Assembly: GCA_002269645.1 (NCBI GenBank)
Contig: NIVC01002022.1
Location: 1-64,000 of the forward strand
From: Macrostomum lignano
Taxonomy: Eukaryota
Reading direction: 5' to 3'
DNA: 64,000 nucleotides
Of the stretch, positions 16,119-55,335 are shown piece by piece. The notes beneath the pieces are model-generated. The model was not told the DNA's origin. It searched no databases and saw only the letters and a list, made by a program, of their open reading frames with translations. Made by a program: the position numbers and the translations under genes. Each line of letters starts with the position of its first letter. Within the stretch, counting starts at the first letter, position 1.

Positions 16119-16823
16119 TCAGTACTTCTTGACGAACTTGGCCCAGCTCGGGTCGGTCTCGATGGCGTCGCCGACGCTCGAGTCAGCGAAGTCCAGCATG
16201 CGGCAGGCGCCGCTGGCCCGGTTGAACAGGACGGCCCGGCACTCCCAGCGCTGCACGCAGAGCCACAGGCAGTGAAGCTCCGAGCTCACCGAGGCGTCAG
16301 TGTAGCAGTAGACAGGACTGATGTTGCCCAGCCTCAGGAACTCCGCTCGTCGAAGGTATTCGCTGTTCGGCGTCGCGATTGGCTGGCAGACGAATGTTTT
16401 GTCCCAATTCGCGGGTCTGTCTCTCAAGCCGGTAATGCTGACCACTACAAAGTCATCGTCTTCCGAAAGGCGGTTCGGCAAGCCAGACTTCCAGTCGCTG
16501 TCATCCAAAGTCGGAAACAGCGAGCCGTTGGCAAATCTCCAGCCGCTGCGAGACGTGCCCGCCTCAACCAGGAGGTCCGTCACTCCGATGAAATAAGTAT
16601 CATTCCAGTGATTGACGGCTCGGATGGCAGTCAGGTCCATCAGCAGCTCTCCGCCGATGCCCAGGCACAGTCTGGCTGCGTCGCACCAGCTGGAAATGCT
16701 GGTGTTGTTGCCGATGAAGACGCAGCTGCCCAGCCTGTCGATGAACGGAGCGACGCAGGCGGCAGAGGCGATGGCTGCCAGCCCCGCAAACAGCGTCAGC
16801 TTGAGCAGCTGCTTCGGTGGCAT
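16119..16823 (-). CDS. Secreted C-type lectin-like + PAN/Apple domain protein, copy 1 (234 aa)
   Basis: Signal peptide, then CTLD pattern (C..PF...GSC, SW.DA.R.C..IGGEL, YFIG.TD, W.SGLPN, FVC), then PAN-like C-x3-C..C..V.FN...G.C. Intact single exon. Confidence 0.9.
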   Translation of the reverse strand: MPPKQLLKLTLFAGLAAIASAACVAPFIDRLGSCVFIGNNTSISSWCDAARLCLGIGGELLMDLTAIRAVNHWNDTYFIGVTDLLVEAGTSRSGWRFANGSLFPTLDDSDWKSGLPNRLSEDDDFVVVSITGLRDRPANWDKTFVCQPIATPNSEYLRRAEFLRLGNISPVYCYTDASVSSELHCLWLCVQRWECRAVLFNRASGACRMLDFADSSVGDAIETDPSWAKFVKKY

Positions 16824-16949
16824 CAGCGATTCTCAAATCGGTCAGTTTGGAGCAGCTTGATTTGTGAGCAATTTGAAATTTTCTTGGTTGCAAACTAGTG
16901 GTATTTCTGCAAAATTTGAGGTTAAATCTACAGTCAGTCTGTACGCTCG

Positions 16950-17000
16950 CATTTATAGAGAGCTGCAGCCAATGACTCGTAGCCAACCAATCGTCCAGTG
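16950..17000 (-). promoter_or_regulatory. Conserved TATA + CCAAT promoter of the lectin genes (shown for copy 1)
   Basis: CTATAAATGC on the minus strand about 90-140 nt upstream of each ATG (TATAAA at + coordinates 16952, 27497, 36162, 39698, 55440; TATGAA at 49644). Adjacent GCCAAT...GCCAACCAA motifs are kept in all six units. Confidence 0.65.
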
Positions 17001-17167
17001 CAGCAGCGCTGACTTCTTGGACTGGCTTTGAAAGGCGCCCAATAGGTTTCACAGCATTTTTGCCTCGACACGTAGCTGCTAAACAAGTAAAGAAGTTAAT
17101 TTTTTAATTAACTGACTAAAGAGGTTTGTAGGAGACTATTAAAATAAAATTAATTTAAAAAATATCG

Positions 17168-17340
17168 CAGAGTGGGGCCGTATAGTCTATCGCTGCAATC
17201 TGATGAGCCAGCGGCCCAGGCTCGATTCCAACTGCAGTCGCATTAATTTGGGGCTGAATTGGAATCTCGGCTTTGCAACTCGATCGCTCGAACGTACTGG
17301 GTCTGGGTGGTGGTTTTCCATGTTGCTGAGTAAAAATAAA
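17168..17340 (+). mobile_element. tRNA-derived SINE upstream of lectin copy 1
   Basis: GGGGCCGTATAGTCTATCGC...GGCTCGATTCC head. Homologous copies at about 27718 and 49893. Confidence 0.6.
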
Positions 17341-18269: not shown

Positions 18270-18635
18270 CAGGGGCGTCGCAATGGATTTTATGATGGGG
18301 GACGAAGCCAAAAATTCTACATTACTAAATTCCTACATTATTTTTGGAATGGGTGTTGTTAGCACTCATTTTGGCGCCGCTAACAGGCACTCGTTTTGGA
18401 ACCGCAGGCACTCATTTTGGCGCCGCAGGCACTCATTTTGGCGCTGCAGGCACTCATTTTGGCGCTACAGGCACTTATTTTGGCGCTGCAGGCACTTATT
18501 TTGGCGCTGCAGGCACTCATTTTAGCGCTGCAGGCACTCATTTTGGCGCTGCAGGCACTCATTTTGGCGCCACAGGCAGTCATTTTAGCCCCGAAGCGCT
18601 ATATTTTGTCGGTCTGAAGCAAAATTATTGATTCA
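18270..18635 (+). mobile_element. hAT-like MITE 5' part with expanded 21-bp array (GGCACTCATTTTGGCGCTGCA)n
   Basis: Starts CAGGGGCGTCGCAATGGATTTTATGATGGGG like the complete copy at 31793. About 10 internal 21-mers at 18362-18590. 3' end missing. Confidence 0.75.
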
Positions 18636-18816
18636 TATATCGAGTGGTAATTTGCAACGATTGCCAGCCGCTATCTGCCTAGGTACGTCACGATTTACAA
18701 GTGCTTATCCAGTTTGTGTGATGAATTTGCAACGCTTAGAAAGTAAATCAACAGGGGTATTACCTTTGATTTACCTTTTTTCAAAGGTAATACCCCTTGA
18801 ATTACCTTGACATGCA

Positions 18817-24941: not shown

Positions 24942-25935
24942 TTATGGAGGCTCCTCCCCTTGGTGCAGGCGGGCAGCACCGGGGGCTCGCAGTGCCGAGT
25001 CACCCTGTCCTTCACCTTGGCAGCCAGGGCGTCGGAGATCGCACAGTGCGACAGGATCAGCGGGACGACCGGGTTGTGCAGTACGCCGGCAAGTTCGTTG
25101 GCGCCGTGTGGAATTTTGAGTCCTCAGGACCTCGATGAGCTTGGCCTCCTGGCGCTGACGCCGCTCGTTAGCTCTGGGTCCTGTGCCCTCCCGTGTCCAG
25201 ATGCCGGTGAAGGCGAAGTCCGCCAGGCTGTGGCCACCGCAGTGTCGCGGACGTGCCAAATGTCGCCGATGTGCGCCAGCATGCGACCGCGGATGCTGTT
25301 GACAGTCTCGCTGACGTAGACCGTGTGGTCGCACCGGCGGCAGACACGGCATAGACGGCGTTCGTGGCGTTACAGTCGATTCTTTGGCTGATGAGTATCT
25401 GTACGGTGGTGGCTGCGGAACCGGGGCAGACGGTGCTGAACTGGGCGTGCGCCTGGCAGCACTTGCAGAGCCGGGCCGGGTTGCACGGCAGAAAGCCGAA
25501 CTCCCACCGACTGGTCGGGTAGAAGCCCAGCTCAGTCAGCACGTCGTACTTGATGGTGCGGAGGAAACGCCGGCTGTAGCCTTGGTGCTGCACCAGATTC
25601 GACCTCAGCCCGGTGCACGCTGCGACGAAGTCGGCCATCCGAGCGCACCACCGGGCGTACCTGATGAGCTGGGACTTCACCACGCCTTGGAAAGTCCGCT
25701 TAGGATGGAAGGAGCCGCGATGGATGAGGGCTCGGCTGTCGGTGGGCTTGAAGTACACCATAATTGCCAGGCTCTCGCTGTCGCCACCGCGGTCCCAGAA
25801 GACGGTGGTGTCAAGGAAGTAGACCTCTGTACTGCTGTAGCTCAGTTGAATCCGGATGTTCGGGTCGAGGGTGTCCAGGTGTTGGTGGAACTTGACCTGC
25901 TCCGCCTCGGTGCCCCGCCACACTCCAAAGTAAAT
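24942..25935 (-). mobile_element. Penelope-like retroelement, 5'-truncated and frameshifted (RT thumb + GIY-YIG endonuclease)
   Basis: FGVWRG...FHQHLDTLDPNI...FLDTTV...VYFKPTDS...SFHP...VKSQLIRY is the PLE RT C-terminus. NAVYA/VCRRCDHTVYVSET is GIY-YIG-like, followed by RRQRQEAKLIEVLRT. At least two frameshifts. Confidence 0.9.
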
Positions 25936-25979
25936 ATAAGGAGGGTGAGATGTAGAGAGAGAGGATAGGAGGGTGAGAT

Positions 25980-26016
<37 letters not shown>

Positions 26017-26659
26017 GAGAGCGAGAGTGAGAGAGAGATAGTGAATAGTAGGTTGAAATGTAGAGAGTGGATAGGAGGGTGGGACAGACAGCAACACAGC
26101 CTGTGAGCTCGTAGACAGTTGCGCAATGCAACGTGCTCCCTAGTAGAAAGGAACTCAGTAAAGTTTCTGTCCCAACAGACAGGGCTGGACATGTACAGAG
26201 CAGACAGTGTTTGAATAATATGTGAACACTTCTGTGAAAAATTAACACTTTGGTACGAGCATTGACAAATTGACAATACTTAAACCAATGGCCGTGACCA
26301 GCATTTAAAGATTGACAGCAAAAAGACTCAAGTTGGCAGGTCAACTCCCTAGTTAGAAATCCGATTCCTTCGAAAAACCTTGTTGGCTTAGGACATATAG
26401 CTCTAATCGTCACATCTTTGCTACCTTGATCAGCAATCTTACTCTGCTGTTCATTCTGGATGCCTATTATCTTACTAGTATAATATTCCGAAGAAAAAGA
26501 TGTGAAGATATTTTTCTTGCCGATGGCTTTCTGCCAAAGTAATTAGAGAAACTCTTCAGGGATTCGCGTAGACGAGACGAGTGGCTTCGGTTCTTTAAAC
26601 GAGAGATAAAGCGGTAGAATTCAGTATTGCACAGTTAGCAGCTATGCAATAGCTACGTC

Positions 26660-27364
26660 TCAGTACTTCTTGACGAACTTGGCCCAGCTCGGGTCGGTCT
26701 CGATGGCGTCGCCGACGCTCGAGTCAGCGAAGTCCAGCATGCGGCAGGCGCCGCTGGCCCGGTTGAACAGGACGGCCCGGCACTCCCAGCGATGCACGCA
26801 GAGCCACAGGCAGTGAAGCTCCGAGCTCACCGAGGCGTCAGTGTAGCAGTAGACAGGACTGATGTTGCCCAGCCTCAGGAACTCTGCTGGCTCCAGGTAC
26901 TCGCTGTTCGGCGTCGCGATCGGCTGGCAGACGAACTGTGTACGCCCAGACCCTGGTTGGTCCCACAAACCAGCAATGCTGACCGCTAAAAAATAATCAT
27001 CTGCTGAATAGCGGTTCGGCAAGCCAGACTTCCAGTCGCTGTCATCCAAAGTCGGAAACAGCGAGCCGTTGGCGAATCTCCAGCCGCTGCGAGACGTGCC
27101 CGCCTCAACCAGGAGGTCCGTCACTCCGATGAAATAAGTATCATTCCAGTGATTGACGGCTCGGATGGCAGTCAGGTCCATCAGCAGCTCTCCGCCGATG
27201 CTCAGGCACAGTCTGGCTGCGTCGCACCAGCTGGAAACGCTGGTGTTGTTGCCGATGAAGACGCAGCTGCCCAGCCTGTCGATGAACGGAGCGACGCAGG
27301 CGGCAGAGGCGATGGCTGCCAGCCCCGCAAACAGCGTCAGCTTGAGCAGCTGCTTCGGTAGCAT
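26660..27364 (-). CDS. C-type lectin-like + PAN/Apple protein, copy 2 (234 aa)
   Basis: Intact paralogue of copy 1 with distinct loop RYSADDYFLAVSIAGLWDQPGSGRTQ. Confidence 0.9.
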   Translation of the reverse strand: MLPKQLLKLTLFAGLAAIASAACVAPFIDRLGSCVFIGNNTSVSSWCDAARLCLSIGGELLMDLTAIRAVNHWNDTYFIGVTDLLVEAGTSRSGWRFANGSLFPTLDDSDWKSGLPNRYSADDYFLAVSIAGLWDQPGSGRTQFVCQPIATPNSEYLEPAEFLRLGNISPVYCYTDASVSSELHCLWLCVHRWECRAVLFNRASGACRMLDFADSSVGDAIETDPSWAKFVKKY

Positions 27365-27717
27365 CAGCGATTCTCAAGTCGGTCAGCGTGGAGCAGCTTG
27401 ATTTATGAGCAGTCAGACTTTTTCTTGGTTGCCAACTAGAGGTATTTCTGCAAATTTTTGAGTATTTAATCTGTAGTCAGTCTGTATACGCTTGCATTTA
27501 TAGACAACTGCAGCCAATCAGTCGTAGCCAACAAACCGTCCAGTGCAGCAGTTCCAACTTCGGAGACTGGCTTTGAAAGGCGCCCAATAGGTTTCCTAGC
27601 ATTTTGCCTCTACACGTAGCTGCTAAACAAGTAAAGAAATTAACTTTTTTAAATTGACTGACTAAAGAGTTTTCTAGGAGACTATTATAAAATAAAAAAG
27701 ATTTGAAATATGTCGCC

Positions 27718-31272: not shown

Positions 31273-31284
31273 AGGGGGCTACAG

Positions 31285-31660: not shown

Positions 31661-31923
31661 CTGAGATGCCAGGGGTCAATTGGAAGTTGTTGTTAGATCG
31701 AAGGGAGAATTAGTGTTAAACCATGGCTTAAAGGGAGTCTTTGATGCGAGAGCTCACAGAGGGTGCTGATATCTTATAGTCTAGATAGCTGGCAGGGGCG
31801 TCGCCATGGATTTTATGATGGGGGGGGACAAAACCAAGAATTCAACATGTACATGTACATCAACTAAATTTTGGCACCCCAGGCACTCCTTTTGGCGCCG
31901 CAGGCGCTATATTTTGGCACCCT

Positions 31924-34300
31924 TGTAGTGCACTGCTATTGCGGGTCTCTCCTCCGCTCTCTCACTTTAGCCTTCCCCCACGTGCGTGTACGCCCTCGCA
32001 CTGTTACGCAACAGTGGCACGTTGTGCTCATTAGCTCGTTGTGCTCACTACTATATATATGCTTTAAATATACGGCCATGAGAGGCCAACTTCTGCACTT
32101 ACACAAGCGCACTACAATGGCGTCGCAAGCAGGATTACCCACACCGCCCCCATTGAACTTGCGCGAGGAGCCCCATGCGGCACATACAAAGTGGAGCAAG
32201 TGGCTGGCTCAGTTCCAGCTGTTCGCCACGGCCGCTGACATCTCTGACAAGAAGCGACTTCGCCAACTGCTGCTGTACACAGCGGGCGAGGACCTGCAGG
32301 CCATTGCAGCCGGACTCGCCGACACCGGCGATGACGTCGACAAGCTAATCCAGGCTCTCAATGAGCACTTCACCAGCCAGCTCAACCTGCCCTTCACACG
32401 CTACCAGTTCCGGCTGTGCACCCAGCAGACCGGGGAGTCCCTGGACGACTGGCTACGGCGGCTCAACGACACCGCGGACTGCTGCAAATTCGAAGGCCTC
32501 CGGGACTCGCTGATCCGCGACCAGCTGATCGCCGGCTGCAGCTCCGAGCAGCTCCGCAGGAAGCTGCTGGCCATGGACAACGTGGACCTGGGCCAGGCAG
32601 TCCGGGTGGCCAGGGCCATGGAGGCAGCGGAGTCGCAGGCCAGCCTCATGGAGACCAGCGCAGCGACCGTGCAGCGGCTGCGCAAGCGCGAGTCCAGCCC
32701 GCCAGAGCAGCCGCAGAAAACATCCACGCAGACAGCCGATCGCACGCAGCCAAAGTGCATCCGCTGCGGCAACTTCGGCCACCGCAGCTGCAGCGCAGCG
32801 GTAGGCAAGACCTGCAACCGATGCGGCAAGCCGAATCACCTCGCCAAGGCCTGCTTGTCCCGGCCAGAGGACGTGCGAGCACTGCGGGTCGGCAGCGACA
32901 GTTCGGGCGAAGAGGACGACGTCTTCTGCCTGACCGTGATGGCCTCCGACAAGAACGCAACAGCGGCTCTGGCCACCGTGCTGGTAGAAGCGACTCCAGT
33001 GCAGGTGGTGGTGGACAGCGGAGCCGACTGTAACATCCTCACCGAGGCAGCCTGGCGAAAGCTCCCGGGGCCCTTAGGCCTGCAGCCGACGACAAAGAGG
33101 ATCTTTCCATATCGCTCAGCAAAACCTCTGCGCACTCTGGGAGTCTGCAGCCTGCGAGTCTCGGTGGGCCGAGGGTTCAGCGTGCCAGCTTCATCATCGT
33201 CCCCGGTAGCGGCATCAGTGTACTCGGCCGTGCAACCTCTACATCCCTGCAGCTGCTGAGTCTGGAGACGCAGGCCCGGGCAACGGCCAGAGAGGCTACA
33301 AGTCTGACTGATGCTCTTAATGACGAGCAACCAGTCCACGACAGAGTATCGCTGCAGCAGCTCAGCACCGGCGAGTCCGCATCGGAAGGCCCGACCATCA
33401 ACAGCATCCGCGAGGCCACTGCTCGGGACCCGGCTCTGAACTTCGTCATGCAGTCTCTGGCGACTGGCAACTGGCGCTTCGGCGCTACAGCCCAGGCGAG
33501 CAGCTTCCACTCGCTCAAGCGAGAGCTTCTGGTGCGGGACGGCATGCTGCTCAGGGGCGGCAGGATCGTTGTACCCGCAGCGCTTCAGCAGCAGACCATC
33601 AGTTGGGCCCACCAGGGTCAATTCGGCAGGAGAAAGGCCATCGACCGGCTGCGGAAGGAAGTCTGGTGGCCCGGCATGGTCCGGCAGGCGCAGGCGGCTC
33701 TGTCAAGGCGACGCCTGCATCAGAACTTCGGAGGCGGTGACGCGCGCGAGACACTCCCAGCCGGCCAACAGCGGACGGCAGACACAGCAGGAGACGTTCA
33801 GCAGCCGTCAGAGCGCGACTGGAAGCTGGTGACCAGACGGCGCGCCGCTAATTTCAATCGGCGCTGCGCCAGCAAGTAACCGAAGCTGTGCGATTGGCTA
33901 TCGGCTGGGCGGCAACACGTCAGCGAGACACAATGCCACAGCAACACAGCCGGGCTCTATTAATTAAACAAACTACATATGCGCAAATTACATAAATTTA
34001 CTTAAATGTATCAAATGTTTCAGTTTTCGTTATGCTTAATCTGCGAAATTATCTAATTCTACTTTCTAATTCTAAAGGGTTTGTACTTTTTTTGGTTGGG
34101 GGAGAGATGTAGTGCACTGCTATTGCGGGTCTCTCCTCCGCTCTCTCACTTTAGCCTTCCCCCACGTGCGTGTACGCCCTCGCACTGTTACGCAACAGTG
34201 GCACGTTGTGCTCATTAGCTCGTTGTGCTCACTACTATATATATGCTTTAAATATACGGCCATGAGAGGCCAACTTCTGCACTTACACAAGCGCACTACA
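31924..34300 (+). mobile_element. Non-autonomous Gypsy (Mag-like) LTR retrotransposon, 2377 bp
   Basis: Identical 193-bp LTRs (31924-32116, 34108-34300; TGTAGTG...CACTACA). 5-bp TSD ACCCT. PBS TGGCGTCGCAAGCAGGATT (tRNA-Ser-like). PPT GGTTGGGGGAGAGA. Confidence 0.95.
32117..33879 (+). CDS. Gag (CCHC knuckles) - aspartic protease - integrase Zn-finger remnant, 1-nt frameshift near 33174
   Basis: CIRCGNFGH..C and CNRCGKPNHLAKAC; protease VVVDSGADCNIL. The -1 frame from 33175 gives RASFIIVPGSGISVLGR...IREATARDPAL...GNW...LLRGGRIVVPAALQ...AHQGQFG...VWWPGM. No RT (YxDD), RNase H or DDE core. Confidence 0.85.
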
Positions 34301-35372
34301 ACCCTGAAGAAAAATTATTGATTAACACAATGGGTCACAAGGTGGGGTGGAGGGGACAAAGCATTGGCATGTCCGCCCCAAAGCTTTTACTGGGGGGGGG
34401 CATGTCCCCCCTGTCCCCCCGGTGGCGCGCGCCTGATAGCTGGCTTTCAGGCCTAATGCTTTTCTGTTTTAAAAATCACTAACGATGGGCGACTGTACAA
34501 AGTCAAAACCTACATGTAGTTGATTTATTCCTTTGTTTGCCTCCCCTACGGGGGCGCAAATTGCTAGTCCAAACATTAAATTTACTTTGCAGAACTTGAT
34601 CTTGTTACTAAAGTTGACATCAACGCAGTTTTATACAAAAGTGTGGAGAACTCCTGCTATATTCGTTTGTTCCCTATCTAAACCTAAATGTAGGCTTCGT
34701 TTCTAAGCGAGATTGAGAGATCCGGTTGCGAAAGTCAAATAAGAAATCTAAATGTATAGCAGCTACGAGCGTATTTTAGTTGTGAGATTTTGCATCCGGG
34801 ATCGGGCTACGTCAGTGCGACATGTAAACATTAGCTTGGCAACTGCAAACTCTGATATCTGACCCCGATCCAGACGCGTTCTGTGGACACTGCAAAATAA
34901 AGGATCTACATGTAGCTATTGGCAGGTCAGCTCCCTAGTTGGAACTCCGATTCCTTCGAAAGAGCTGGTTTGGCTTTGGACCATAGATATTCGCTACCTT
35001 GGGACAGACCATCCTGATCAGCTACTTGCTCAACCTTACTCTGCTGTCATTCTGGGTGCGTATTTCCTTAGTAGTAAAATCTTTGCCTGCCGGTGGCTTT
35101 CTGTCAACGGAACTGACGAAATTCTTTGGCGATTCGCTTAGTCGAGATGAATGTCTTCACTTCTTGAAACGAGAGATAAGGACATAGAATTCAGCATTGC
35201 ACTGTCGACTGAGTCACAAGACAAATTTTAACAAACTCAAGCCTAGGGTAATCAAAAAGGACAAAGCGTTGGCGTTAGCGAAGGGCAAGTGCATTCTTGA
35301 AACTTCTGACGCTAAAAACATTGTTAATTTTTATTCTCTGATTCCTGCAGAATTTAAAAAGCCATCGCAATG

Positions 35373-36071
35373 TCAGTACTTCTTGACGAACTTGGCCCAG
35401 CTCGGGTCGGTCTCGATGGCGTCGCCGACGCTCGAGTCAGCGAAGTCCAGCATGCGGCAGGGGCCGCTGGCCCGGTTGAACAGGACGGCCCGGCACTCCC
35501 AGCGATGCACGCAGAGCCACAGGCAGCGAAACTCCGAGCTCACCGAGGCGTCAGTGTAGCAGTAGATAGGACTGATGTTGCCCAGCCTCAGGAACTCCGC
35601 TCGTCGAAGGTATTCGCTGTTCGGCGTCGCGATCGGCTGGCAGACAAATTTTCTCTTCAGATAGCCGCCTTGGTCTCGCAAGCCTGCAAAGCTGATTGCT
35701 ACAAAGTCATCGTCATTCGTAATGCTGTTCGGCAAGCCGGACACCCAGTCGCTGTTATCCAAAATCGGAAACAGCGAGCCGTTGGCGAATCTCCAGCCGC
35801 TGCGAGACGTGCCCGCCTCAACCAGGAGGTCCGTCACTCCGATGAAGTAATAATCAAGCCAGTGATTGACAGCTCGGATGGCAGTCAGGTCCATCAGCAG
35901 CTCTCCGCCGATGCCCAGGCACAGTCTGGCTGCGTCGCACCAGCTGGATCGGCTGCTGCTGATGTAGACGCAGCTGCCCAGTCTGTCGATGAACGGAGCG
36001 ACGCAGGCGGCAGACGCGAGAGCTGCCAGCCCCGCAAACAGCGTCAGCTTGAGCAGCTGCTTTGGTGGCAT
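35373..36071 (-). CDS. C-type lectin-like + PAN/Apple protein, copy 3 (232 aa)
   Basis: Intact paralogue with a 2-aa deletion in the first loop (YISSSRSSW) and loop SITNDDDFVAISFAGLRDQGGYLKRK. Start taken at MPPKQ (36071). Confidence 0.9.
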   Translation of the reverse strand: MPPKQLLKLTLFAGLAALASAACVAPFIDRLGSCVYISSSRSSWCDAARLCLGIGGELLMDLTAIRAVNHWLDYYFIGVTDLLVEAGTSRSGWRFANGSLFPILDNSDWVSGLPNSITNDDDFVAISFAGLRDQGGYLKRKFVCQPIATPNSEYLRRAEFLRLGNISPIYCYTDASVSSEFRCLWLCVHRWECRAVLFNRASGPCRMLDFADSSVGDAIETDPSWAKFVKKY

Positions 36072-36334
36072 CAGTGAGTCGAATTCGTCTGGCTTGGCTG
36101 TCAACTGGAGTTTTTTATGACAAATATTTGGCCCTAAATTTAGCGAGTCTGTACGCTTGCATTTATAGACAGCTGCAGCCAATCAGTCGTAGCCAACCGA
36201 CCGTCCAGTGCAGCAGCGCCGACTTTGGAGGCTGGCTTTGAAAGATTCTAATAGGTCTTGCAGCATTCTCGTATCTACAAGTGGCTATATGCAGTAAAGA
36301 AATAGTAGACTTTACTCACTAACAAGTTTTTTAT

Positions 36335-38865: not shown

Positions 38866-39570
38866 TCAGTACTTCTTGACGAACTTGGCCCAGCTCGGGT
38901 CGGTCTCGATGGCGTCGCCGACACTCGAGTCAGCGAAGTCCAGCATGCGGCAGGCGCCGCTGGCCCGGTTAAACAGGACGGCCCGGCACTCCCAGCGCTG
39001 CACGCAAAGCCAAAGGCAGTGAAGCTCCGAGCTCACCGAGGCGTCAGTGTAGCAGTAGACAGGACTGATGTTGCCCAGCCTCAGGAACTCCGCTCGTTGA
39101 AGATATTCGTTGTTCGGCGTCGCGATGGGCTGGCAGATAAATCTTTTGTCCGAATTCGCGGGTCTGTCTCGCAAGCCCGCCTTGGTGACACCTACAAAGT
39201 CATCGTCATTCGAATCACTGTTCGGCAAGCCAGACTTCCAGTCGCTGTCATCCAAAGCCGGAAACAGCGAGCCGTTGGCGAATCTCCAGCTGCTGCGAGA
39301 CCTGCCCGCCTCAACCAGGAGGTCCGTCACTCCGATGTAGTAAAAATCAAGCTCGTGATTGACGGCTCGGATGGCAGTCAGGTCCATCAGCAGCTCTCCG
39401 CCGATGCCCAGGCACAGTCTGGCTGCGTCGCACCAGCTGGAAACGCTGGGGTTGTCGCCGATGAAGACGCAGCTGCCCAGCCTGTCGATGAACGGAGCGA
39501 CGCAGGTGGCAGAGGCGATGGCTGCCAGCCCCGCAAACAGCGTCAGCTTGAGCAGCTGCTTCGGTGGCAT
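38866..39570 (-). CDS. C-type lectin-like + PAN/Apple protein, copy 4 (234 aa)
   Basis: Intact paralogue with loop SDSNDDDFVGVTKAGLRDRPANSDKR. Confidence 0.9.
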   Translation of the reverse strand: MPPKQLLKLTLFAGLAAIASATCVAPFIDRLGSCVFIGDNPSVSSWCDAARLCLGIGGELLMDLTAIRAVNHELDFYYIGVTDLLVEAGRSRSSWRFANGSLFPALDDSDWKSGLPNSDSNDDDFVGVTKAGLRDRPANSDKRFICQPIATPNNEYLQRAEFLRLGNISPVYCYTDASVSSELHCLWLCVQRWECRAVLFNRASGACRMLDFADSSVGDAIETDPSWAKFVKKY

Positions 39571-40011
39571 CAGCGAGTCTCAAGTCGGTCAGCTTGGAGC
39601 AGCTTAATTTGTGAGCAATTTGAAATATTCTTGGTTGCAAACTAGTGGTATTCTGCAAAATGTGAGGTTAAATCTACAGTCAGTCTGTACGCTCGCATTT
39701 ATAGAGAGCTGCAGCCAATGACTCGTAGCCAACCAATCGTCCAGTGCAGCAGCACCGACTTTGGAGACTGGCTTTGAAAGGCGCCCAATAGGTTTCACAG
39801 CATTCTCGTATCTACACGTAGCTGTGAAGCAAGTAAAGAAATTGAATTCTGTATTTTATTGAGTTAGAAATTTTGTAGGACGCAAGTCCTAAAAGTGGGA
39901 ACTAGAAAAATGCTCAACAACAGTCGAAACTGCTACCCTTCAAGCAAATCGGCATATTTCGCACTTCTCTCTGCGAGTGACGCAACTTACAGCACGCTGA
40001 AGTCAATACGA

Positions 40012-40500
40012 GCACACCCTCCATTGGCACTCTACGAGCACACCCTCCATTGGCACTCTACGAGCAGACCCTCCATTGGCACTCTACGAACACACCCTCC
40101 ATTGGCACTCTACGAGCAGACCCTCCATTGGCACTCTACGAGCACACCCTCCATTGGCACTCTACGAGCAGACCCTCCATTGGCACTCTACGAACACACC
40201 CTCCATTGGCACTCTACGAGCAGACCCTCCATTGGCACTCTACGAACACACCCTCCATTGGCACTCTACGAGCAGACCCTCCATTGGCACTCTACGAGCA
40301 CACCCTCCATTGGCACTCTACGAGCACACCCTCCATTGGCACTCTACGAACACACCCTCCATTGGCACTCTACGAGCAGACCCTCCATTGGCACTCTACG
40401 AACACACCCTCCATTGGCACTCTACGAGCACACCCTCCATTGGCACTCTACGAGCACACCCTCCATTGGCACTCTACGAGCGTACCCTCCATTCGCACTC
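40012..40500 (+). repeat. 26-bp minisatellite (CATTGGCACTCTACGAGCACACCCTC)n
   Basis: About 18 copies. Equals the 20-mer at 11.5 kb plus a 6-nt insertion. Confidence 0.95.
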
Positions 40501-43863: not shown

Positions 43864-43909
43864 TCAAAGTGCAAATTTGACTGATTCGAACACGTAATGC
43901 TTGTAATGT

Positions 43910-45740
43910 CTGCACAGTGTTCAGTGAGGTGTCTGCACTGGGTTTCAGTGAGATGCCTGCACTGAGGTTCAGTGAGGTGTCTGCACTGGGTTTCAGTGAG
44001 ATGCCTGCACTGGGGTTCAGTGAGGTGTCTGCACAGTGTTCAGTGAGGTGTCTGCACTGGGTTTCAGTGAGATGCCTGCACTGAGGTTCAGTGAGGTGTC
44101 TGCACTGGGTTTCAGTGAGATGCCTGCACTGGGGTTCAGTGAGGTGTCTGCACAGTGTTCAGTGAGGTGTCTGCACAGTGTTCAGTGAGGTGTCTGCACT
44201 GGGTTTCAGTGAGGTGTCTGCACTGGGTTTCAGTGAGATGCCTGCACTGAGGTTCAGTGAGGTGTCTGCACTGGGTTTCAGTGAGGTGCCTGCACTGGGG
44301 TTCAGTGAGGTGTCTGCACAGTGTTCAGTGAGGTGTCTGCACTGGGGTTCAGTGAGGTGCCTGCACTGGGGTTTCAGTGAGATGCCTGCACTGAGGTTCA
44401 GTGAGGTGTCTGCACTGGGTTTCAGTGAGGTGCCTGCACTGGGGTTCAGTGAGGTGTCTGCACAGTGTTCAGTGAGGTGTCTGCACTGGGGTTCAGTGAG
44501 GTGCCTGCACTGGGGTTTCAGTGAGATGCCTGCACTGAGGTTCAGTGAGGTGTCTGCACTGGGTTTCAGTGAGGTGCCTGCACTGGGGTTCAGTGAGGTG
44601 TCTGCACAGTGTTCAGTGAGGTGTCTGCACTGGGGTTCAGTGAGGTGCCTGCACTGGGGTTTCAGTGAGATGCCTGCACTGAGGTTCAGTGAGGTGTCTG
44701 CACTGGGTTTCAGTGAGGTGCCTGCACTGGGGTTCAGTGAGGTGTCTGCACAGTGTTCAGTGAGGTGTCTGCACTGGGGTTCAGTGAGGTGCCTGCACTG
44801 GGGTTTCAGTGAGATGCCTGCACTGAGGTTCAGTGAGGTGTCTGCACTGGGTTTCAGTGAGGTGCCTGCACTGGGGTTCAGTGAGGTGTCTGCACAGTGT
44901 TCAGTGAGGTGTCTGCACTGGGGTTCAGTGAGGTGCCTGCACTGGGGTTCAGTGAGGTGTCTGCACAGTGTTCAGTGAGGTGTCTGCACAGTGTTCAGTG
45001 AGGTGTCTGCACTGGGGTTCAGTGAGGTGCCTGCACTGGGGTTTCAGTGAGATGCCTGCACTGAGGTTCAGTTGTGTCTGCACTGGGGTTCAGTGAGGTG
45101 TCTGCACTGGGATTCAGTGAGGTGTCTGCACTGGGGTTCAGTGAGGTATCTGCATTGGGGTTCAGTGAGGTATCTGCATTGGGGTTCAGTGAGGTGCCTG
45201 CACTGGGGTTCAGTGAGGTGTCTGCATTGGGGTTCAGTGAGGTGTCTGCACTGGGTTCAGTGAGGTGTCTGCACTGGGTTCAGTGAGGTGTCTGCACTGG
45301 GGTTCAGTGAGGTGTCTGCACTGGGGTTCAGTGAGGTGTCTGCACTGGGTTCAGTGAGGTGTCTGCACTGGGTTCAGTGAGGTGTCTGCACTGGGGTTCA
45401 GTGGTGCCTGCACTGGGGTTCAGTGAGGTATCTGCATTGGGGTTCAGTGAGGTATCTGCATTGGGGTTCAGTGAGGTGCCTGCACTGGGGTTCAGTGAGG
45501 TGACTGTATTGGGGTTCAGTGGTGTCTGCATTGGGGTTCAGTGAGGTGCCTGCACTGGGGTTCAGCGAGTTGTCTGCACTGGGGTTCAGTGAGGTGTCTG
45601 CACTGGGGTTTCAGTGAGGTGCCTGCACTGGGGTTCAGTGAGGTGTCTGCACTGGGGTTCAGTGAGGTGCCTGCACTGGGTTTCAGTGAGGTGTCTGCAC
45701 TGGGGTTCAGTGAGGTGCCTGCACTGAGGTTCAGTCAAGT
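43910..45740 (+). repeat. 24-bp satellite (CAGTGAGGTGTCTGCACTGGGGTT)n with 144-bp higher-order unit
   Basis: Variant GAGATGCC monomer recurs every 144 bp (44235, 44379, 44523...). Explains the FSEVSALG ORFs. Confidence 0.96.
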
Positions 45741-46559
45741 GTCAATCAAGGACTGTATGCACTTTTTCACGCTTTGTGCCCGCCACAGCAGCTTGCGTGA
45801 ATCTTTTTGAGCGTAGCGTGGCGTTGGCTCATTTTTCTGTTGATATCTTTGGGCAAAGTAGGCAGTGTTGCAGCGTTTTACTTAACAGTTTTTCGTGTTC
45901 TTCTTTGTCTAGTGAGGCGCCTTCTCTTATTTAGATTAATTAGGCCTCGCATAGGAGAGCACGAGTTGCTAAGCACTCGCTTTGCTGGGCTAAGCAACGA
46001 GAGAGGCTGAGTGGCTGGGGAGCCTCAGCTACTAAGAGTAGAAATTGTGATGCGCGACGGACTAATAGCCAACAGTTCCGGGCGGCATGGACTCCCTCAG
46101 TGCCAGAGGACTATTGAGGTCATCCGGGCCTGATCACGATGCTGCACCGAGGCACCGCCGAACTGTTGGCTGCGTGCAGAGCCTGTAGGTGTTCGAAGCC
46201 GCTGGTCTTGCAGCATACAACCGCATCTGATCATCTTATTGCCGCGTGAAAGGTCACCCGCCAGCTTTGAATCTCGCCAGCGTCAGAACCCACTGCAGAA
46301 AAATTTCCCGAGTAGCGGAATCCTCCACAGCTTATACAAATTAGAAACAACATGCAAATGTTTTAATTGCCGATTAATGTAATTAGCCAAAGTTTGCCGG
46401 GACGAGTGGCTTCGGTTCTTTAAACGAGAGATAAAGTGGTGTTGGCTGGCTGAGTGACACGAAAAACTTCAACTTTAACTTCAACTTTTCTTTGAACTTC
46501 AACTTCAACTTTCAAACTTCAACAAAGGTTATTCTTTTGTTAGAATGCTCTCTGTCTTG

Positions 46560-47295
46560 GCTGCAATGTGTCCAGTTATCGGGTTGCAATGTGTCCAGTT
46601 ATCGGGTTGCAATGTGTCCAGTTATCGGGTTGCAATGTGTCCAGTTATCGGGTTGCAATGTGTCCAGTTATCGGGTTGCAATGTGTCCAGTTATCGGGTT
46701 GCAATGTTTCCAGTTATCGGGTTGCAATGTGTCCAGTTATCGGGTTGCAATGTGTCCAGTTATCGGGTTGCAATGTGTCCAGTTATCGGGTTGCAATGTG
46801 TCCAGTTATCGGGTTGCAATGTGTCCAGTTATCGGGTTGCAATGTGTCCAGTTATCGGGTTGCAATGTCCAGTCTTCGGGTTGCAATGTGTCCAGTCATC
46901 GGGTTGCAATGTGTCCAGTCATCAAGTTGCAATGTGTCCAGTCATCAAGTTGCAATGTGTCCAGTCATCAAGTTGCAATGTGTCCAGTTATCGGGTTGCA
47001 ATGTGTCCAGTCATCGAGTTGCAATGTGTCCAGTCATCGAGTTGCAATGTGTCCAGCTATCGGGTTGCAATGTGTCCAGTTATCGGGTTGCAATGTGTCC
47101 AGTCATCGGGTTGCAATGTGTCCAGTTATCGGGTTGCAATGTGTCCAGTCATCGAGTTGCAATGTGTCCAGCTATATCGAGTTGCAATGTGTCCAATCAT
47201 CGGGTTGCAATGTGTCCAGTCATCGGGTTGCAATGTGTCCAGTCATCGGGTTGCAATGTGTCCAGCTATCGGGTTGCAATGTGTCCAGTCATAGG
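46560..47295 (+). repeat. 23-bp minisatellite (GTGTCCAGTTATCGGGTTGCAAT)n
   Basis: About 31 copies, with a variant gradient toward the right end. Confidence 0.96.
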
Positions 47296-48850
47296 GTTGA
47301 AGTGAGCCCTATTTTCTAGCTTCCTAAGTCGAATTTCTCCAAGTTTAGTGAGTCTCTTCAGTCAGACCTTCTCCAGAGATACAGAAAATTGCATGGCCAT
47401 TTCAATACTTCTATCCTACCACAGACACCAATAGTTGCGACATAATTGTAGTTACTGGCTTTACCAATAGCTACACTTCCACAGTTTTACTGGTTTTAAA
47501 CATGAATTCTTTAGGTTAACTTCTGAGCACGAGTCTGTCTAAGTATTTCTTAATGCCTGACTTAGATTTCGATTTTCGTTGCTGTTGATGGGGTGGATAC
47601 AAACAGGCATGGTCAGCAAAGGCAGGGTTTTTTTAGTAACTATAATCGTAGAAAACACATATTTGCTTCAATCCATTAAACTAGTATTGTTGCTACGGGG
47701 TCGGAGGGTGGACTACTTGGTGTCAGTCATGGTGGAAGTCCCAATCGCTCTCTAACTCAACCAAGGCAAGGCAATGGCTTTGAGTCTTTTTCCCTCTCTT
47801 TCGTGCGCATCGGTCCGCAGGTCCACCCTCCCCCCCTGGTTGCTACGCTCCTCGGGGTTGGCCGTAGGTCTTCCCGGCCCGGCCATGTCAACCGCATCGC
47901 CTTTGTCTTCTGTCTAGAATGGAAGATTGGCTGCTCTGTCAGCCACCCCTTCTGTTTTGCCACGCTTCGTTGCTTTCGACTGTAGGCCTCCATTGTTTTA
48001 CTTCTTTACTTCATCTTTCTTCTTGCTTTTAACTTTTAACTTTTCTTTTGCTGCATAGCCCATTTCTTATGCATTTCTAGAGAGGAGAAGAAAGGGCAGA
48101 TGAAGGGATAGATGAGAGACGGAAGAGGAGAGGGGAGAGGTGGGGATTGACGAGAGAGGCGAGATGAGAGATGAGAGGGGAGATAAGGGGAGAGGAGAGA
48201 AGGGAGATGAGACCCGGAGGAGGGGAGAGAGGATTGCTATTGTGAAGTTTCAAAGGACCCGAGGCCCGCGGATAGAGAGGCTTCGCGGGCGGCATGTGAC
48301 CCGAGGGCCGGAGTTTTCCGACCACTGATCTACCTGAAACTGACAGCTAAAAGACTCAAGATGTCAGGTCGGTTCCTAGTTCGAAATCCGATTCCTTCGA
48401 AAGAGCTGGTTTGGGTTAGGACCTTAGCTGCTCGTCACACATCTTCGCTACCTTGGGGGCTGGCCATTCCCATCAGCTACTTACTCAATCTCGCTCTGCT
48501 GTTCATTCTGGATGCGTCTTATTCTGAGTAGCGCAATATTCTAAAGAAAAACACGTGGAGACTTTTTTGCTTGCCGATGGCTTTCTGCCAATGTAATTAG
48601 AGAAACTCTTCAGTGATACGCTTAGACGAGACAAGTGGCTTCAGTTCTTTAAACGAGAAATAAGGCGGTAGAGCTCGGTATTGCAGTGCTGGCTATGGTG
48701 ACACGACAAACTTCAACTTTAACTTCTAGAGTAAGTAAAAAGAACAAAGAGCAAAGTGAGCAAAGTGCATGTGCAGTCTTAAAACTTCTAAAATTCTTAA
48801 TTTTTACTGTCTGATTTTTTCGTAGGATTCAAGAAGCCATTTACGTCGCA

Positions 48851-49555
48851 TCAGTACACCTTGACGAACTTGGTCCAGTTTGGGTCGGTCTCGATGGCGT
48901 CGCCGACGCTCGAGTCAGCGAAGTCCAGCATGCGGCAGGCGCCGCTGGCCCGGTTGAACAGGACGGCCCGGCACTCCCAGCGCTGCACGCAGAGCCACAG
49001 GCAGTAAAGCTCCGAGCTCACCGAGGCGTCAGTGTAGCAGTAGACAGGACTGATGTTGCCCAGCCTCAGGAACTCAACTGGCTCCAGGTATTCGCTGTTC
49101 GGCGTCGCGATTGGCTGGCAGACGAATGTTTTGTCATGTTTCCCGGGTCTGTCTCGTAAACCAGCAATGCTGACCGCTACAAAGTCATCGTCATTTGAAC
49201 CCCTGTTCGGCAAGCCAGACATCCAGTCGCTGTCATCCAAAGTCGGAAACAGCGAGCCGTTGGCGAATCTCCAGCCGCTGCGGGACGTGCCCGCCTCAAC
49301 CAGGAGGTCCGTCACTCCGATGTAGTAAAAGTCAATCCAGTGATTGACGGCTCGGATGGCAGTCAGGTTCATCAGCAGCTCTCCGCCGATGCCCAGGCAC
49401 AGTCTGGCTGCGTCGCACCAGCTGGAAACGCTGGGGTTGTTGCCGATGAAGACGCAGCTGCCCAGCCTGTCGATGAACGGAGCGACGCAGGCGGCAGAGA
49501 CGATGGCTGCCAGCCCCGCAAACAGCGTCAGCTTGAGCAGCTGCTTCGGTGGCAT
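48851..49555 (-). CDS. C-type lectin-like + PAN/Apple protein, copy 5 (234 aa)
   Basis: Intact paralogue with loop RGSNDDDFVAVSIAGLRDRPGKHDKT, ending NWTKFVKVY. Start taken at MPPKQ (49555). Confidence 0.9.
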   Translation of the reverse strand: MPPKQLLKLTLFAGLAAIVSAACVAPFIDRLGSCVFIGNNPSVSSWCDAARLCLGIGGELLMNLTAIRAVNHWIDFYYIGVTDLLVEAGTSRSGWRFANGSLFPTLDDSDWMSGLPNRGSNDDDFVAVSIAGLRDRPGKHDKTFVCQPIATPNSEYLEPVEFLRLGNISPVYCYTDASVSSELYCLWLCVQRWECRAVLFNRASGACRMLDFADSSVGDAIETDPNWTKFVKVY

Positions 49556-49892
49556 CAGTGAGTCGAATTTGTGCGGCTTGGCTGTCAACTGGTTGTTTTT
49601 CTGAGAAATTAGAGTCCCCATCTAGTGAGTCTGTGCGCTTGCATTCATAGAGAGCTACAGCCAATGACTTTTAGCCAACCAATCGAGCCCGTTGCAGCAG
49701 TGCCGACTTGGAGACTGGCTTTCAATGATGCTAAAAAACTTTTGCAGCATCCTCGACTCGACACATAGCTTTTGAACAAGAAAATAAAATAATTTTTTTG
49801 ATTTAATTGAGCCCGGAATTTCGTTGAAGACTGATAAAATACGAAGTGAAGCAAGTCCAGAAAAGTGTGAACGACTAAAAACAAAACTTGCA

Positions 49893-52400: not shown

Positions 52401-52879
52401 CCTGCGTCACGACTCGCAACTGCATTAAGTACATATATAATATGCATTTGTAGTGACCAATTGCGACCACCAACCTACTTGGGTTCAGAAACCGTTCAAT
52501 AAGGAAGGTTTACGAGCTTTCGGCGAACAACTGAGACGAGTCCTTGCATGGTCACATGATCATCTGGATCTGATGGTGTGAGACGAACCTCTGAAAGCAT
52601 CCCAAGAGACCAAATGCGCATTGAGAAAAGCCATCAGGAGCTACCTGAAATGTTAGAAATTTGCTAAGTTAAAAGGCCAACGAAGGCATCTTAGATTCAC
52701 TGCAAAACCTAATTTAAAAAATTACATTCTATGCGCAGTTTACTACTTACGAGTAAAGATAGTCGTGTGCACGTGTAAATTTTTACTTTACCTAAAGTTG
52801 ACAGCTAAAATATGTTACTTTACTACTGGGCTCGTTCTTGGCCCCACCACATGCAATTACTGTGCGCGAGTCATCACAA

Positions 52880-53356
52880 TGGCGTCGCACCTCTCGGATG
52901 CAGACCGCGCCTCAACCTGGCTAAAAGTCTTCAAAGCTCTTGCTCGCTCGAAGAAGTGGAAAGATTCAGAATCCTCTAAAACGATTGCTGATAACTTTCC
53001 GACCTTGTGTGGACTGGACACACTTGAGAAGCTAACTCATATTGTTGCATCACGGAGCTGTATATCACTCACCGGCTGATATAGCTGCTGTTACTGGCCA
53101 TAAGGACAGCCGCTCCGTCGTGCGGTATCCGAAGAATTCTAAGCGGGCTTATTGCAAGACGGTAGAGATGTCCAAGAGCTTGGTACAATATATGGGTGAG
53201 CGCAGCGAGATTCCAGGTGAGTCAGAGAGAAGCGCTAAAGAGGGGCGGTTCGTCATAGAGTCTGAGCAAGTCAATCTAAAGGAAGGATCAGAAGAAAAGC
53301 GAGTGAAGAACGGTGGACAATTCTATTTTTCAAGCTGCTCGGTGCACTTTCATTAA
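52880..53356 (+). mobile_element. Crypton-like tyrosine-recombinase remnant
   Basis: DIAAVTGHKDSRSVVRY matches the YR C-terminal I..TGH.S....Y motif. A disrupted H-x-x-R (CAC ACT TGA GAA GCT) lies just upstream. Most of the N-terminal domain is missing. Confidence 0.55.
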
Positions 53357-54630
53357 TTTCTTCTTGTTATCCTAGAAAGACTATTACGGCTATTGAATTA
53401 ATTAATATCGAAGACCTTTATTCGTGTGTGTTGACCGATTATTTTTTACTGATCGTTGATTGTTATAATGATGTTAACATAATCAATAACTGACATAACC
53501 TATAAAATAAAAGGTCAGTAATTTGCTATTTCTTTTTTCTAATACTGTTGCTATTATTGTTTGTAATCGTACGTAAAAACTTTTCCGTGCAATATACCAA
53601 TATTGACGGGCTGCAGAGGGCAGAAACCAGCTATAACGCCGAAGCGCGTAGCGCCGTGTTAGCTCGTTTCTGACTGATGCGGCCCATCCATATTAGTGTT
53701 ATAGTTATCGGGCGTGAAACCGCGTATCACGAACCGTTGAGACTGTCTATGGTAAAATCCCATTTACTCCAATGCATTCGGTTGGTTTCACGGCCCGCTG
53801 AAAATGTCTATGGCAAAGTTAAAAGAAAGCAGGGTCAAGGGAGCCCCCACATTTGCACGCCAGCACTCAAGACAAAGAAAGAAAGAACGAAATCTAAAAT
53901 ATTGTCTATGGCCAAAACTCCTTATCTAACGAATTGAAAAAAGTAACTGATACTAAGCATTATTTAGCGGTATTAAGCTTTACTTTGAAAATCTACAGTT
54001 TTAGAACCTTTAACTAGATACTTATATGCATACGAGGTTTTTTACTTATGGAAGTCGGCCATAGATTGTTGCAGCGGGTGGGATGCCGTACGTTTCTCCC
54101 CGTTTCAACACGCCTAGACTAACTATAAAAATGCCATTGCTGCACGGCATTGATGCACGGGCCATAGACAAACAATGGGATCCTTGACGTTCACTCATGC
54201 GTGAAGGACATCGTGCAACTCGTGACTTTGCAGGATACTTCATAGTCTTACATCCTGGATGCATATTATTCTGAGTAGCGGAATATTCCAAAGAAAATGA
54301 CATGGTGAATATTTTGCTTGCCGATGGTTTTCTGCCAATATAATTAGAGAAACTCTTAGGTGAAACTCTTTGCTTAGACGAGGCGAGTAGCTTCAATTTT
54401 TTAAACGATAAATAAGGCGGTAGAATTCAGTATTCCAGTGTTGGCTATTGTGACTCGATAAACGTCAAGAGTAATTAAAAAAGAAACAAGCGGAAACTAA
54501 GTAAAACAAAGAGTTGCGTAAGCAAAGTGCATGTGCAGTCTTAAAAATTATGTACTGTCTGACGCTTCTAAAATTCTTAATTTTTACTGTCTGATTTCCT
54601 CGTAGGATTCAAGAAGCCATTTACGTCGCA

Positions 54631-55335
54631 TCAGTACACCTTGACGAACTTGGCCCAGCTCGGGTCGGTCTCGATGGCGTCGCCGACGCTCGAGTCAGCG
54701 AAGTCCAGCATGCGGCAGGCGCCGCTGGCCCGCTTGAACAGGACGGCCCGGCACTCCCAGCGCTGCACGCAGAGCCACAGGCAGTAAAGCTCCGAGCTCA
54801 CCGAGGCGTCAGTGTAGCAGTAGACAGGACTGATGTTGCCCAGCCTCAGGAACTCCGCTCGCTCCAGGTATTTGCTGTTCGGGGTCGCTATCGGCTGGCA
54901 GACAAATTTTTTGTCCTGATTCGGGGGTCTGTCTACCAAGCCCGCTTTGCTGACCCCTACAAAGTCATCGTCTTCCGAAAGGCGGTTCGGCAAGCCAGAC
55001 TTCCAGTCGCTGTCATCCAAAGTCGGAAACAGCGAGCCGTTGGCGAATCTCCAGCCGCTGCGAGACCTGCCCGCCTCAACCAGGAGGTCCGTCACTCCGA
55101 TGAAGTAATAATCAATCCAGTGATTGACGGCTCGGATGGCAGTCAGGTCCATCAGCAGCTCTCCGCCGATGCCCAGGCACAGTCTGGCTGCGTCGCACCA
55201 GCTGGAAACGCTGGGGTTGTCGCCGATGAAGACGCAGCTGCCCAGCCTGTCGATGAACGGAGCGACGCAGGCGGCAGAGGCGATGGCTGCCAGCCCCGCA
55301 AACAGCGTCAGCTTGAGCAGCTGCTTCGGTAGCAT
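54631..55335 (-). CDS. C-type lectin-like + PAN/Apple protein, copy 6 (234 aa)
   Basis: Intact paralogue with loop RLSEDDDFVGVSKAGLVDRPPNQDKK, ending KFVKVY. Confidence 0.9.
   Translation of the reverse strand: MLPKQLLKLTLFAGLAAIASAACVAPFIDRLGSCVFIGDNPSVSSWCDAARLCLGIGGELLMDLTAIRAVNHWIDYYFIGVTDLLVEAGRSRSGWRFANGSLFPTLDDSDWKSGLPNRLSEDDDFVGVSKAGLVDRPPNQDKKFVCQPIATPNSKYLERAEFLRLGNISPVYCYTDASVSSELYCLWLCVQRWECRAVLFKRASGACRMLDFADSSVGDAIETDPSWAKFVKVY

Follow-up and report, generated by a model that had tools for sequence, protein, structure and literature searches.

The first 64,000 nucleotides of contig NIVC01002022.1 of the flatworm Macrostomum lignano (GenBank assembly GCA_002269645.1), here called the window, contain six complete and co-oriented open reading frames (ORFs) on the minus strand. 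Each is predicted to encode a secreted protein with a C-type lectin-like domain (CTLD) followed by a PAN/apple domain, of 234 amino acids in five copies and 232 in one (c3; the copies are numbered c1 to c6 along the window). A preliminary description, made from the letters alone, had read the locus as six intact intronless paralogues with variable binding loops on a near-invariant scaffold and had proposed a diversifying recognition repertoire. Here, we examine the fold, the distribution of the variation and the selection acting on it. We hold with moderate confidence that the locus is a tandem array of six apparently functional secreted CTLD and PAN paralogues, in which a variable binding face on a constant body is kept by selection.

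Six copies of a CTLD and PAN gene

All six paralogues were found intact where the preliminary description had placed them, on the minus strand (Table 1). The copies are 87-92% identical to c1, with 174 invariant alignment columns, and a tblastn search with c1 returns these six copies only, with no gene fragments or pseudogenes in the 64 kb window. That they are intronless is supported by the uninterrupted reading from methionine to stop in each ORF and by end-to-end alignment with relatives of about 240 amino acids. In-frame upstream extensions of c3 and c5 are present and were judged irrelevant. Plus-strand ORFs of 208-235 amino acids lie antisense over c1, c3 and c4 (16272-16898, 35370-36077 and 39019-39645); these are less likely to be genes than a side effect of how high the GC content at third codon positions (GC3) is on the sense strand.

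A 20-nt TATA-box motif (CTGCAGCTCTCTATAAATGC and close variants) has exactly six matches in the window, one per copy and with 0 expected, at 86-130 nt 5' of each ATG and directly preceded by two inverted CCAAT boxes. With such a motif upstream of each, every copy looks like an independent intron-free transcription unit. A scan of the window for bacterial promoters and terminators gave no match, which is not relevant to a eukaryote.

The domain assignment is sound at the level of the family and borderline for the PAN domain of single copies. In Pfam, PAN_1 scores 19.4-22.2 bits on the window copies against a cut-off of 21.4, and no copy reaches E <= 1 for Lectin_C. Over 46 aligned family sequences, the six window copies included, Lectin_C is found in 33 and PAN_1 in 35 (best PAN_1 E = 4.8e-7). 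Searched against the PDB, a profile of the six copies matches SIGN-R1 (best E = 8e-5), DC-SIGNR and DC-SIGN in their lectin domains, over residues 30-155; the PAN segment alone has no PDB relative by sequence, and its cysteines C173, C185, C189, C195 and C207 are 90-100% conserved in the 46-sequence alignment. AlphaFold (AF2), given this alignment, returns a model with a predicted local distance difference test score (pLDDT) of 85.5 and a predicted template-modelling score (pTM) of 0.82, while the six copies alone gave a pLDDT of 28.8. Foldseek places the model next to DC-SIGNR, CD23 and SIGN-R1 in the PDB (E about 2e-6, target TM score ~0.72), and model and matches agree on the double-loop CTLD fold. 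The earlier reading of the proteins as two-domain and probably secreted is upheld, and each has a predicted signal peptide.

An exhaustive hidden Markov model (HMM) search of 1.8 billion representative proteins recovered 88 relatives. The top one, Macrostomum lignano A0A1I8HX01, is a 720-amino-acid 'guanylate cyclase' model whose residues 440-671 constitute a seventh paralogue, 87-90% identical to the window copies in the scaffold and 50-66% in the patches defined below. In both A0A1I8HX01 and A0A1I8J6T3 a complete CTLD and PAN paralogue with signal peptide sits between guanylate-cyclase segments, probably a nested or neighboring gene wrongly fused into the model. Many relatives are about 240 amino acids long, align end to end and have the same two domains, among them Opisthorchis felineus CRM22_001245, an 'Apple domain-containing protein' (UniRef). 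By these alignments the genes belong to a flatworm CTLD and PAN family that extends from free-living Macrostomum to parasitic flukes. A word-indexed protein search gave no match for c1 and three proteins for the family alignment, and missed the ~85% identical M. lignano paralogue although it is in the collection; hence, a negative from the indexed search does not mean absence. Two metagenome scans for related loci gave no match. In the literature on Macrostomum C-type lectins and PAN proteins or on flatworm PAN domains, we found no description of a function for the family, and the nearest subjects there (adhesive proteins, an intestinal Ig+CLECT gene, a planarian yolk-gland C-type lectin and the dual-CTLD SCARFs) could not be connected to it by sequence.

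Motifs were assigned through the HMM alignment to SIGN-R1. L115-P116-N117 takes the place of EPN and L133-(R/W/V)134-D135 that of WND, and the positions of cysteines C2 and C3 are occupied by F125 and A/G/P138. The preliminary description had noted LPN for EPN, a replaced WND and a missing inner cysteine pair, and each is confirmed by this alignment and by that of the copies. The inner disulfide between C2 (beta3) and C3 (after beta4), typical of CTLDs and not obligatory, is lacking in all six copies and kept in the consensus of more distant family members. The outer cysteines, C53 (alpha1) and C146 (beta5), are conserved across the 46 sequences in at least 90% and in all, respectively, and are a predicted pair only. 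F/Y-I-G-V at 78-81 aligns with WMGL, a WIGL-type motif, and the N-terminal cysteine pair of long-form CTLDs is present (C23 and C34), with C47 likewise conserved and possibly bonded to C173 across the two domains. Only N117, D122 and D135 remain of the five ligand positions of Ca2+ site 2, and none of the six copies has the EPN or QPD plus WND of strict C-type lectins. Because two of five Ca2+ ligands and the inner disulfide are lost, canonical Ca2+-dependent sugar binding is probably absent.

Variable patches on a near-identical scaffold

We defined patches a, b and c as codons 38-43, 73-78 and 118-143 (38 codons) and compared them with the remaining 196 codons, the scaffold. Variable codons make up 29 of 38 in the patches but 27 of 196 in the scaffold (Fisher p = 4e-14). 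When the gene is scanned without regard to the patches, the densest 26-codon window is placed at codon 118, with 20 variable codons, a density reached in 0 of 20,000 permutations (p < 5e-5). The three patches of the preliminary description are real and its quoted sequences letter-for-letter correct; its example of a single codon with many states (CTT/TAT/ATT/GAT/GGT) refers to codon 119, while at codon 140 each of the six copies has a state of its own. Many patch codons differ at two or three positions. In patch c the variable residues alternate with the fixed D122, D123, F125, G132, L133 and D135, and there is no indel in this patch in seven sequences (the six copies and the M. lignano paralogue). 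The shorter length of c3 is due to two codons deleted in patch a.

The earlier list of patches was right for a to c and incomplete, as it missed a fourth patch, differences in sequons and the hypervariable synonymous sites. Patch d is small and lies in the linker between CTLD and PAN (codons 154-160: SEYLRRA / SEYLEPA / NEYLQRA / SKYLERA / SEYLEPV), and its block-wise sharing among copies suggests conversion tracts. N-glycosylation sequons at N99 and N167 are common to all copies; c1 and c2 have extra ones within patches a and b (N39/N40 and N74), and c5 has them at N63 and N226.

In the SIGN-R1 alignment, patch c corresponds to the contact-bearing beta3-beta4-beta5 region of DC-SIGN, in line with the earlier assignment of this segment to the ligand-binding region of CTLDs. 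In DC-SIGN numbering, we take codon 119 to be equivalent to V351, codon 127 to E358, codon 130 to G361, codon 134 to N365, codons 136-137 to D367-K368 and, in patch b, codon 76 to F313. V351 of DC-SIGN adjoins the Ca2+ site and sets fucose selectivity, and F313 forms a secondary site (PMC7276794). Since variable codons align with V351 and F313, the canonical ligand face would be where patches b and c lie. Patch a corresponds to the beta1-alpha1 loop and probably adjoins the end of patch c, because beta1 (33-39) and beta5 (143-148) are antiparallel partners in the CTLD fold.

Nucleotide diversity is 0.01-0.05 in the scaffold, 0.23-0.29 in patch c and, outside the promoter island, 0.2-0.7 in the flanks, which contain many indels. 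In several pairs of copies BLAST similarity ends exactly at the stop codon, partly because of an indel of ~190 nt. Neighbor-joining trees conflict when built separately for the patches and for the N- and C-terminal parts of the scaffold; c1 and c2, for example, differ by 0.9% in the N-terminal scaffold and by 31% in the patches. By the four-gamete test, 228 of 406 informative site pairs are incompatible, with a minimum number of recombination events (Rmin) of 12, of which 6 lie within patches, and in the scaffold alone 39 of 78 pairs are incompatible (Rmin 4). For individual pairs, a Sawyer-type run test gives marginal values (p = 0.008-0.07, pairs with c1). GC3 is 0.85 in the scaffold (0.74-0.99 in 13-codon windows, save 0.59 in the one spanning patch b), 0.54 in the patches, 0.46-0.53 in patch c and 0.53-0.57 in the neighboring Mab-21 and ankyrin ORFs, and the GC content of the flanks is ~0.40. 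The copies hence have the reticulate history, and the scaffold the excess similarity over the flanks at silent sites too, that define concerted evolution. Diversity contrast, tree conflict, four-gamete failures and GC3 together indicate old duplicates whose scaffold has repeatedly been exchanged with GC-biased conversion, and point to patches that escape homogenization and are shuffled in short blocks. Gene conversion is the most likely cause of the scaffold identity.

The copies are separated by spacers of 3.5-10.5 kb filled with minisatellites and retroelement remains (Table 1). Minisatellites with units of 20-28 nt are abundant, and some of the arrays have relatives elsewhere in the window. 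Between c2 and c3, the spacer holds a gag-like retroelement ORF in whose region a 194-nt direct repeat, possibly long terminal repeats (LTRs) or a recent duplication, is found. A Tudor-domain ORF is possibly one exon of a larger gene. Beyond c6, an ankyrin-repeat ORF and a Mab-21 ORF overlap by 19 nt in different frames and may be parts of a single gene, interrupted by a frameshift or a short intron, for a Mab-21/cGAS-like nucleotidyltransferase with ankyrin repeats.

Table 1 Coordinates of the six genes, their promoter motifs and other features of the window
Feature	Position	Strand	Remarks
c1	16119-16823	-	234 aa CTLD+PAN; patch a 16695-16712, b 16590-16607, c 16395-16472, linker d 16344-16364
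c2	26660-27364	-	234 aa; patch a 27236-27253, b 27131-27148, c 26936-27013, d 26885-26905
c3	35373-36071	-	232 aa; patch a 35949-35960, b 35844-35861, c 35649-35726, d 35598-35618
c4	38866-39570	-	234 aa; patch a 39442-39459, b 39337-39354, c 39142-39219, d 39091-39111
c5	48851-49555	-	234 aa; patch a 49427-49444, b 49322-49339, c 49127-49204, d 49076-49096
c6	54631-55335	-	234 aa; patch a 55207-55224, b 55102-55119, c 54907-54984, d 54856-54876
TATA-box core-promoter motif of c1	16949-16968	-	CTGCAGCTCTCTATAAATGC; ~125 nt 5' of ATG; two inverted CCAAT (ATTGG) directly upstream
TATA motif of c2	27494-27513	-	same 20-nt motif type
TATA motif of c3	36159-36178	-	5' leader shortened by deletions
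TATA motif of c4	39695-39714	-	same 20-nt motif type
TATA motif of c5	49641-49660	-	variant TATGAAT
TATA motif of c6	55437-55456	-	same 20-nt motif type
Minisatellite	3978-7091		136 copies of a 23-mer
Tudor-domain ORF	10955-11443	+	162 aa, E = 5e-7
Minisatellite	11542-12610		related to 40007-40500
Minisatellite	13802-14383		
ORF	25168-26097		309 aa, no assignment
Retroelement gag-like ORF	31871-33259	+	PNMA, zf-CCHC
Direct repeat, 194 nt	31924-32117 and 34108-34301		100% identical
Minisatellite	40007-40500		related to 11542-12610
Minisatellite	43907-45743		related to 62574-63036
Minisatellite	46562-47299		
Mab-21 C-terminal-domain ORF	57157-59109	-	650 aa, PF20266 E = 1.7e-5
Ankyrin-repeat ORF	59091-60659	-	522 aa, Ank_2 E = 7e-105
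Minisatellite	62574-63036		related to 43907-45743

Tests of selection on the patches and rival explanations

Codon likelihoods were computed with our own Goldman-Yang-type (GY94) implementation with F3x4 frequencies. Across the whole gene and with a single synonymous rate (dS), as PAML assumes in M1a/M2a or M7/M8, the site model M2a is hugely preferred over M1a (twice the log-likelihood difference, 2dlnL, = 107.9; p about 4e-24). It assigns a nonsynonymous-to-synonymous rate ratio (omega) of about 16 to 7.4% of codons, namely codons 43, 74, 76, 119, 121, 130, 134, 136, 138-140, 143, 158 and 159. This naive test is confounded, because it assumes one synonymous rate for patches and scaffold. Synonymous differences per site (Nei-Gojobori) are 0.34 in the patches and 0.06 in the scaffold, and in partitioned M0 models the summed tree dS is 1.38 and 0.27, the transition/transversion parameter kappa 0.69 and 5.05, and omega 0.79, not different from 1, and 0.26. 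A joint model with branch lengths in dS puts the ratio of patch to scaffold dS at 4.5-5.2 (2dlnL = 21-27, p about 1e-6, three topologies), and patch omega falls from 2.5-3.1 to 0.75-0.78 on the three topologies once local dS is modelled.

Restricted to the patches, with their own branch lengths, M2a is still preferred over M1a on four topologies including a star tree (2dlnL 6.7-9.0, p = 0.011-0.035), with 17-29% of patch codons in a class of omega 3.0-3.8. Codons 119 and 140 rank top on every topology (posterior 0.90-1.00), and codons 76, 121, 134, 138 and 143 on some trees. The site-model check proposed in the preliminary description thus comes out strongly for the whole gene and loses most of its signal when local dS is used, with the patch-only values as what is left. 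Set against the refuting condition named there, dN/dS at or below 1 at the variable codons, the proposed diversification is supported at modest significance for a minority of patch codons with omega >1, but not for the patches as a whole, whose mean omega is ~0.8 on local dS. A neutrality test that does not depend on dS, comparing the transition/transversion ratio of nonsynonymous and synonymous patch changes, is null by maximum likelihood (p = 0.59), with raw counts that are suggestive. Adaptive diversification of the patches is hence partly supported, as a moderate case that involves a minority of codons at modest significance.

Under the reading that we prefer, the duplications would be old, given flanks that are 20-50% diverged. 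The scaffold, with signal peptide, CTLD core and PAN domain, would have stayed near-identical through purifying selection (omega about 0.26) and exchange between copies, by gene conversion or unequal crossing-over, which would also have left the GC-rich signature at third codon positions. The ligand face of the CTLD, that is the residues after LPN, the beta3-beta4 hairpin, the WND equivalent, the beta4-beta5 loop and the Phe313 equivalent before beta2, would escape this homogenization and diverge on average at an about neutral rate, with structural residues fixed and length strictly conserved. A minority of contact-equivalent codons (119 and 140, probably also 76, 134 and 143) would change faster than synonymous sites. 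The outcome would be six or more germline-encoded, soluble proteins that present different CTLD faces on one body, each variant probably docking through the invariant PAN domain to a partner that all of them share. Selection would keep the faces variable, at least against homogenization and probably for change at a few contact positions. We infer secretion, selection as the reason for which the patches stay different, and the layout of a variable head on a constant handle from the patterns above.

Several observations weigh against this reading. Mean patch omega (0.75-0.79) is indistinguishable from 1, and pairwise omegas range from 0.1 to 2.5 with none significantly >1. The patch-only likelihood-ratio test is modest and comes from 38 codons of six sequences with clear recombination, which inflates site-model tests for positive selection; the likelihoods are from our own code and not from PAML or HyPhy. 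Even without gene conversion, strong codon-usage selection could yield a scaffold with reduced dS and elevated GC3. Simple old divergence does not predict a kappa of 0.69 in the patches next to 5.05 in the scaffold, and the exact window proteins were not found in the public collections searched.

A mean patch omega indistinguishable from 1 would also fit a reading without adaptive diversification, which we consider possible although we lean against it. With the Ca2+/sugar site of the CTLD lost, its loops would drift neutrally under relaxed constraint, and their mismatches would stop conversion tracts at the patch borders, with the scaffold still being homogenized. Besides the mean omega, it accounts for a patch divergence close to that of the flanks, for N- and C-terminal scaffold trees that differ, as expected if tracts end at patch c, and for the drop of patch GC3 to the background level. 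However, free drift does not fit the constant length of patch c in seven sequences when equally diverged flanks are rich in indels, the within-patch preference for M2a on all four topologies, the fixed structural residues between sites with five to six states at contact-equivalent positions, or the intactness of all six copies, each with its promoter. The inverted transition/transversion ratio of the patches fits neither this explanation nor the selected variable face well. Alternatively, if these are secretory genes with high expression, strong selection on their codon usage or on features of the mRNA could lower scaffold dS in copies that are old throughout, with only the patches free; a scaffold GC3 of 0.76-0.99 against 0.53-0.57 in the neighboring genes and the abrupt fall of similarity at the ends of the coding sequence are as it predicts. 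We find it unlikely, given the incompatible site pairs within the scaffold and the conflicting partition trees. A 5-fold reduction of dS by codon selection alone would also be extreme, and the M. lignano paralogue has the same contrast between scaffold and patches.

The patches might also be the target of a mutational or templated process, such as hypermutation confined to them, mutations of several nucleotides at once, or micro-conversion with donors located elsewhere in the genome. The raised patch dS, the distinct kappa (forcing 5.05 on the patches costs 2dlnL = 63), the many codons with two- or three-position differences, and sub-blocks that occur in varied combinations among copies, with an Rmin of 6 inside the patches, would all follow from it. 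It is nevertheless improbable in our view: the 64 kb hold no donor fragments or template copies, variable sites have no adenine bias, and old patches on a homogenized scaffold predict the same pattern equally well. An origin from a diversity-generating retroelement, which uses the CLec fold, was rejected on the balanced majority bases of variable sites (A16, C17, G18, T13), the lack of an extra patch copy in the window and the eukaryotic host. That the array consists of assembly duplicates of one gene or allele, or of non-functional copies, is barely credible. Nothing specific speaks for such an artefact apart from the lack of the exact proteins in public collections, and it is opposed by spacers that differ in length and content, flanks diverged with indels, six intact ORFs, a scaffold omega of 0.26 and a promoter motif for each copy.

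Related systems and biological meaning

The CTLDs of DC-SIGN, DC-SIGNR, SIGN-R1 and CD23 resemble the window proteins in fold, profile match, N-terminal cysteine pair, C1-C4 and the WIGL-like F/Y-IGV motif, and the hypervariable codons fall at what we take to be the equivalents of the DC-SIGN contacts V351, E358, N365, D367, K368 and F313. In contrast to them, the window proteins have LPN and L-R/W/V-D, lack C2-C3, have no neck or membrane anchor and end in a PAN domain. The flatworm family of ~240 amino acids (O. felineus CRM22_001245 and A0A1I8HX01 440-671) shares length, architecture and end-to-end alignment; most of its distant members keep the inner cysteines and E/Q-P-x, whereas the window clade and two further relatives have lost both. 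Homogenized scaffolds with a hypervariable binding region are known from the peptide-binding region of the major histocompatibility complex (MHC), the natural killer (NK) receptor CTLDs Ly49/KLR, snake-venom C-type lectin-like proteins and conopeptides. These systems have in common with the window a tandem array, exchange among paralogues and amino-acid variation strongly localized to the binding surface, and conopeptides likewise show higher synonymous divergence in their variable part. They differ in domain architecture and phylum, and evidence for omega >1 is much weaker here on local dS. The evolutionary pattern is already well known elsewhere, and the family itself is uncharacterized.

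Secreted flatworm CTLD proteins also include the planarian SCARF lectins of Girardia tigrina, which are expressed in mucus glands and at the body edge (PMC7958881). SCARFs are dual-CTLD proteins that retain the Ca2+ and carbohydrate residues (PMC514892) and have no PAN domain, whereas the window proteins combine one CTLD with PAN and have lost the Ca2+ site. Membership in the SCARF group is ruled out by these three differences.

For methodology, the array is a cautionary case. A standard site model would report p about 1e-24, yet what chiefly produces this value is a scaffold under concerted evolution together with a raised local dS, and not nonsynonymous divergence above local dS.

For the biology of M. 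lignano, the role of the proteins may lie in defence, in the handling of mucus or microbiome, or in reproduction. We give little credence to the further step that the array is part of a larger germline recognition repertoire whose CTLD face is actively diversified by templated micro-conversion among dispersed paralogues or by local hypermutation. If true, active diversification would explain the 5-fold higher patch dS, the inverted transition/transversion ratio and the block shuffling, and the repertoire might help this hermaphroditic, regenerating flatworm to discriminate self from non-self, mates or microbes, the constant PAN domain being the effector handle that all variants share. We know of no well-described variable recognition molecules in flatworms. 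RNA interference (RNAi) and transgenesis exist for M. lignano, as do positional, germline, social-environment and single-cell expression data sets, and this compact and tractable array of six genes in 40 kb would be a route to ask how a lectin fold without its sugar site is re-used for variable binding.

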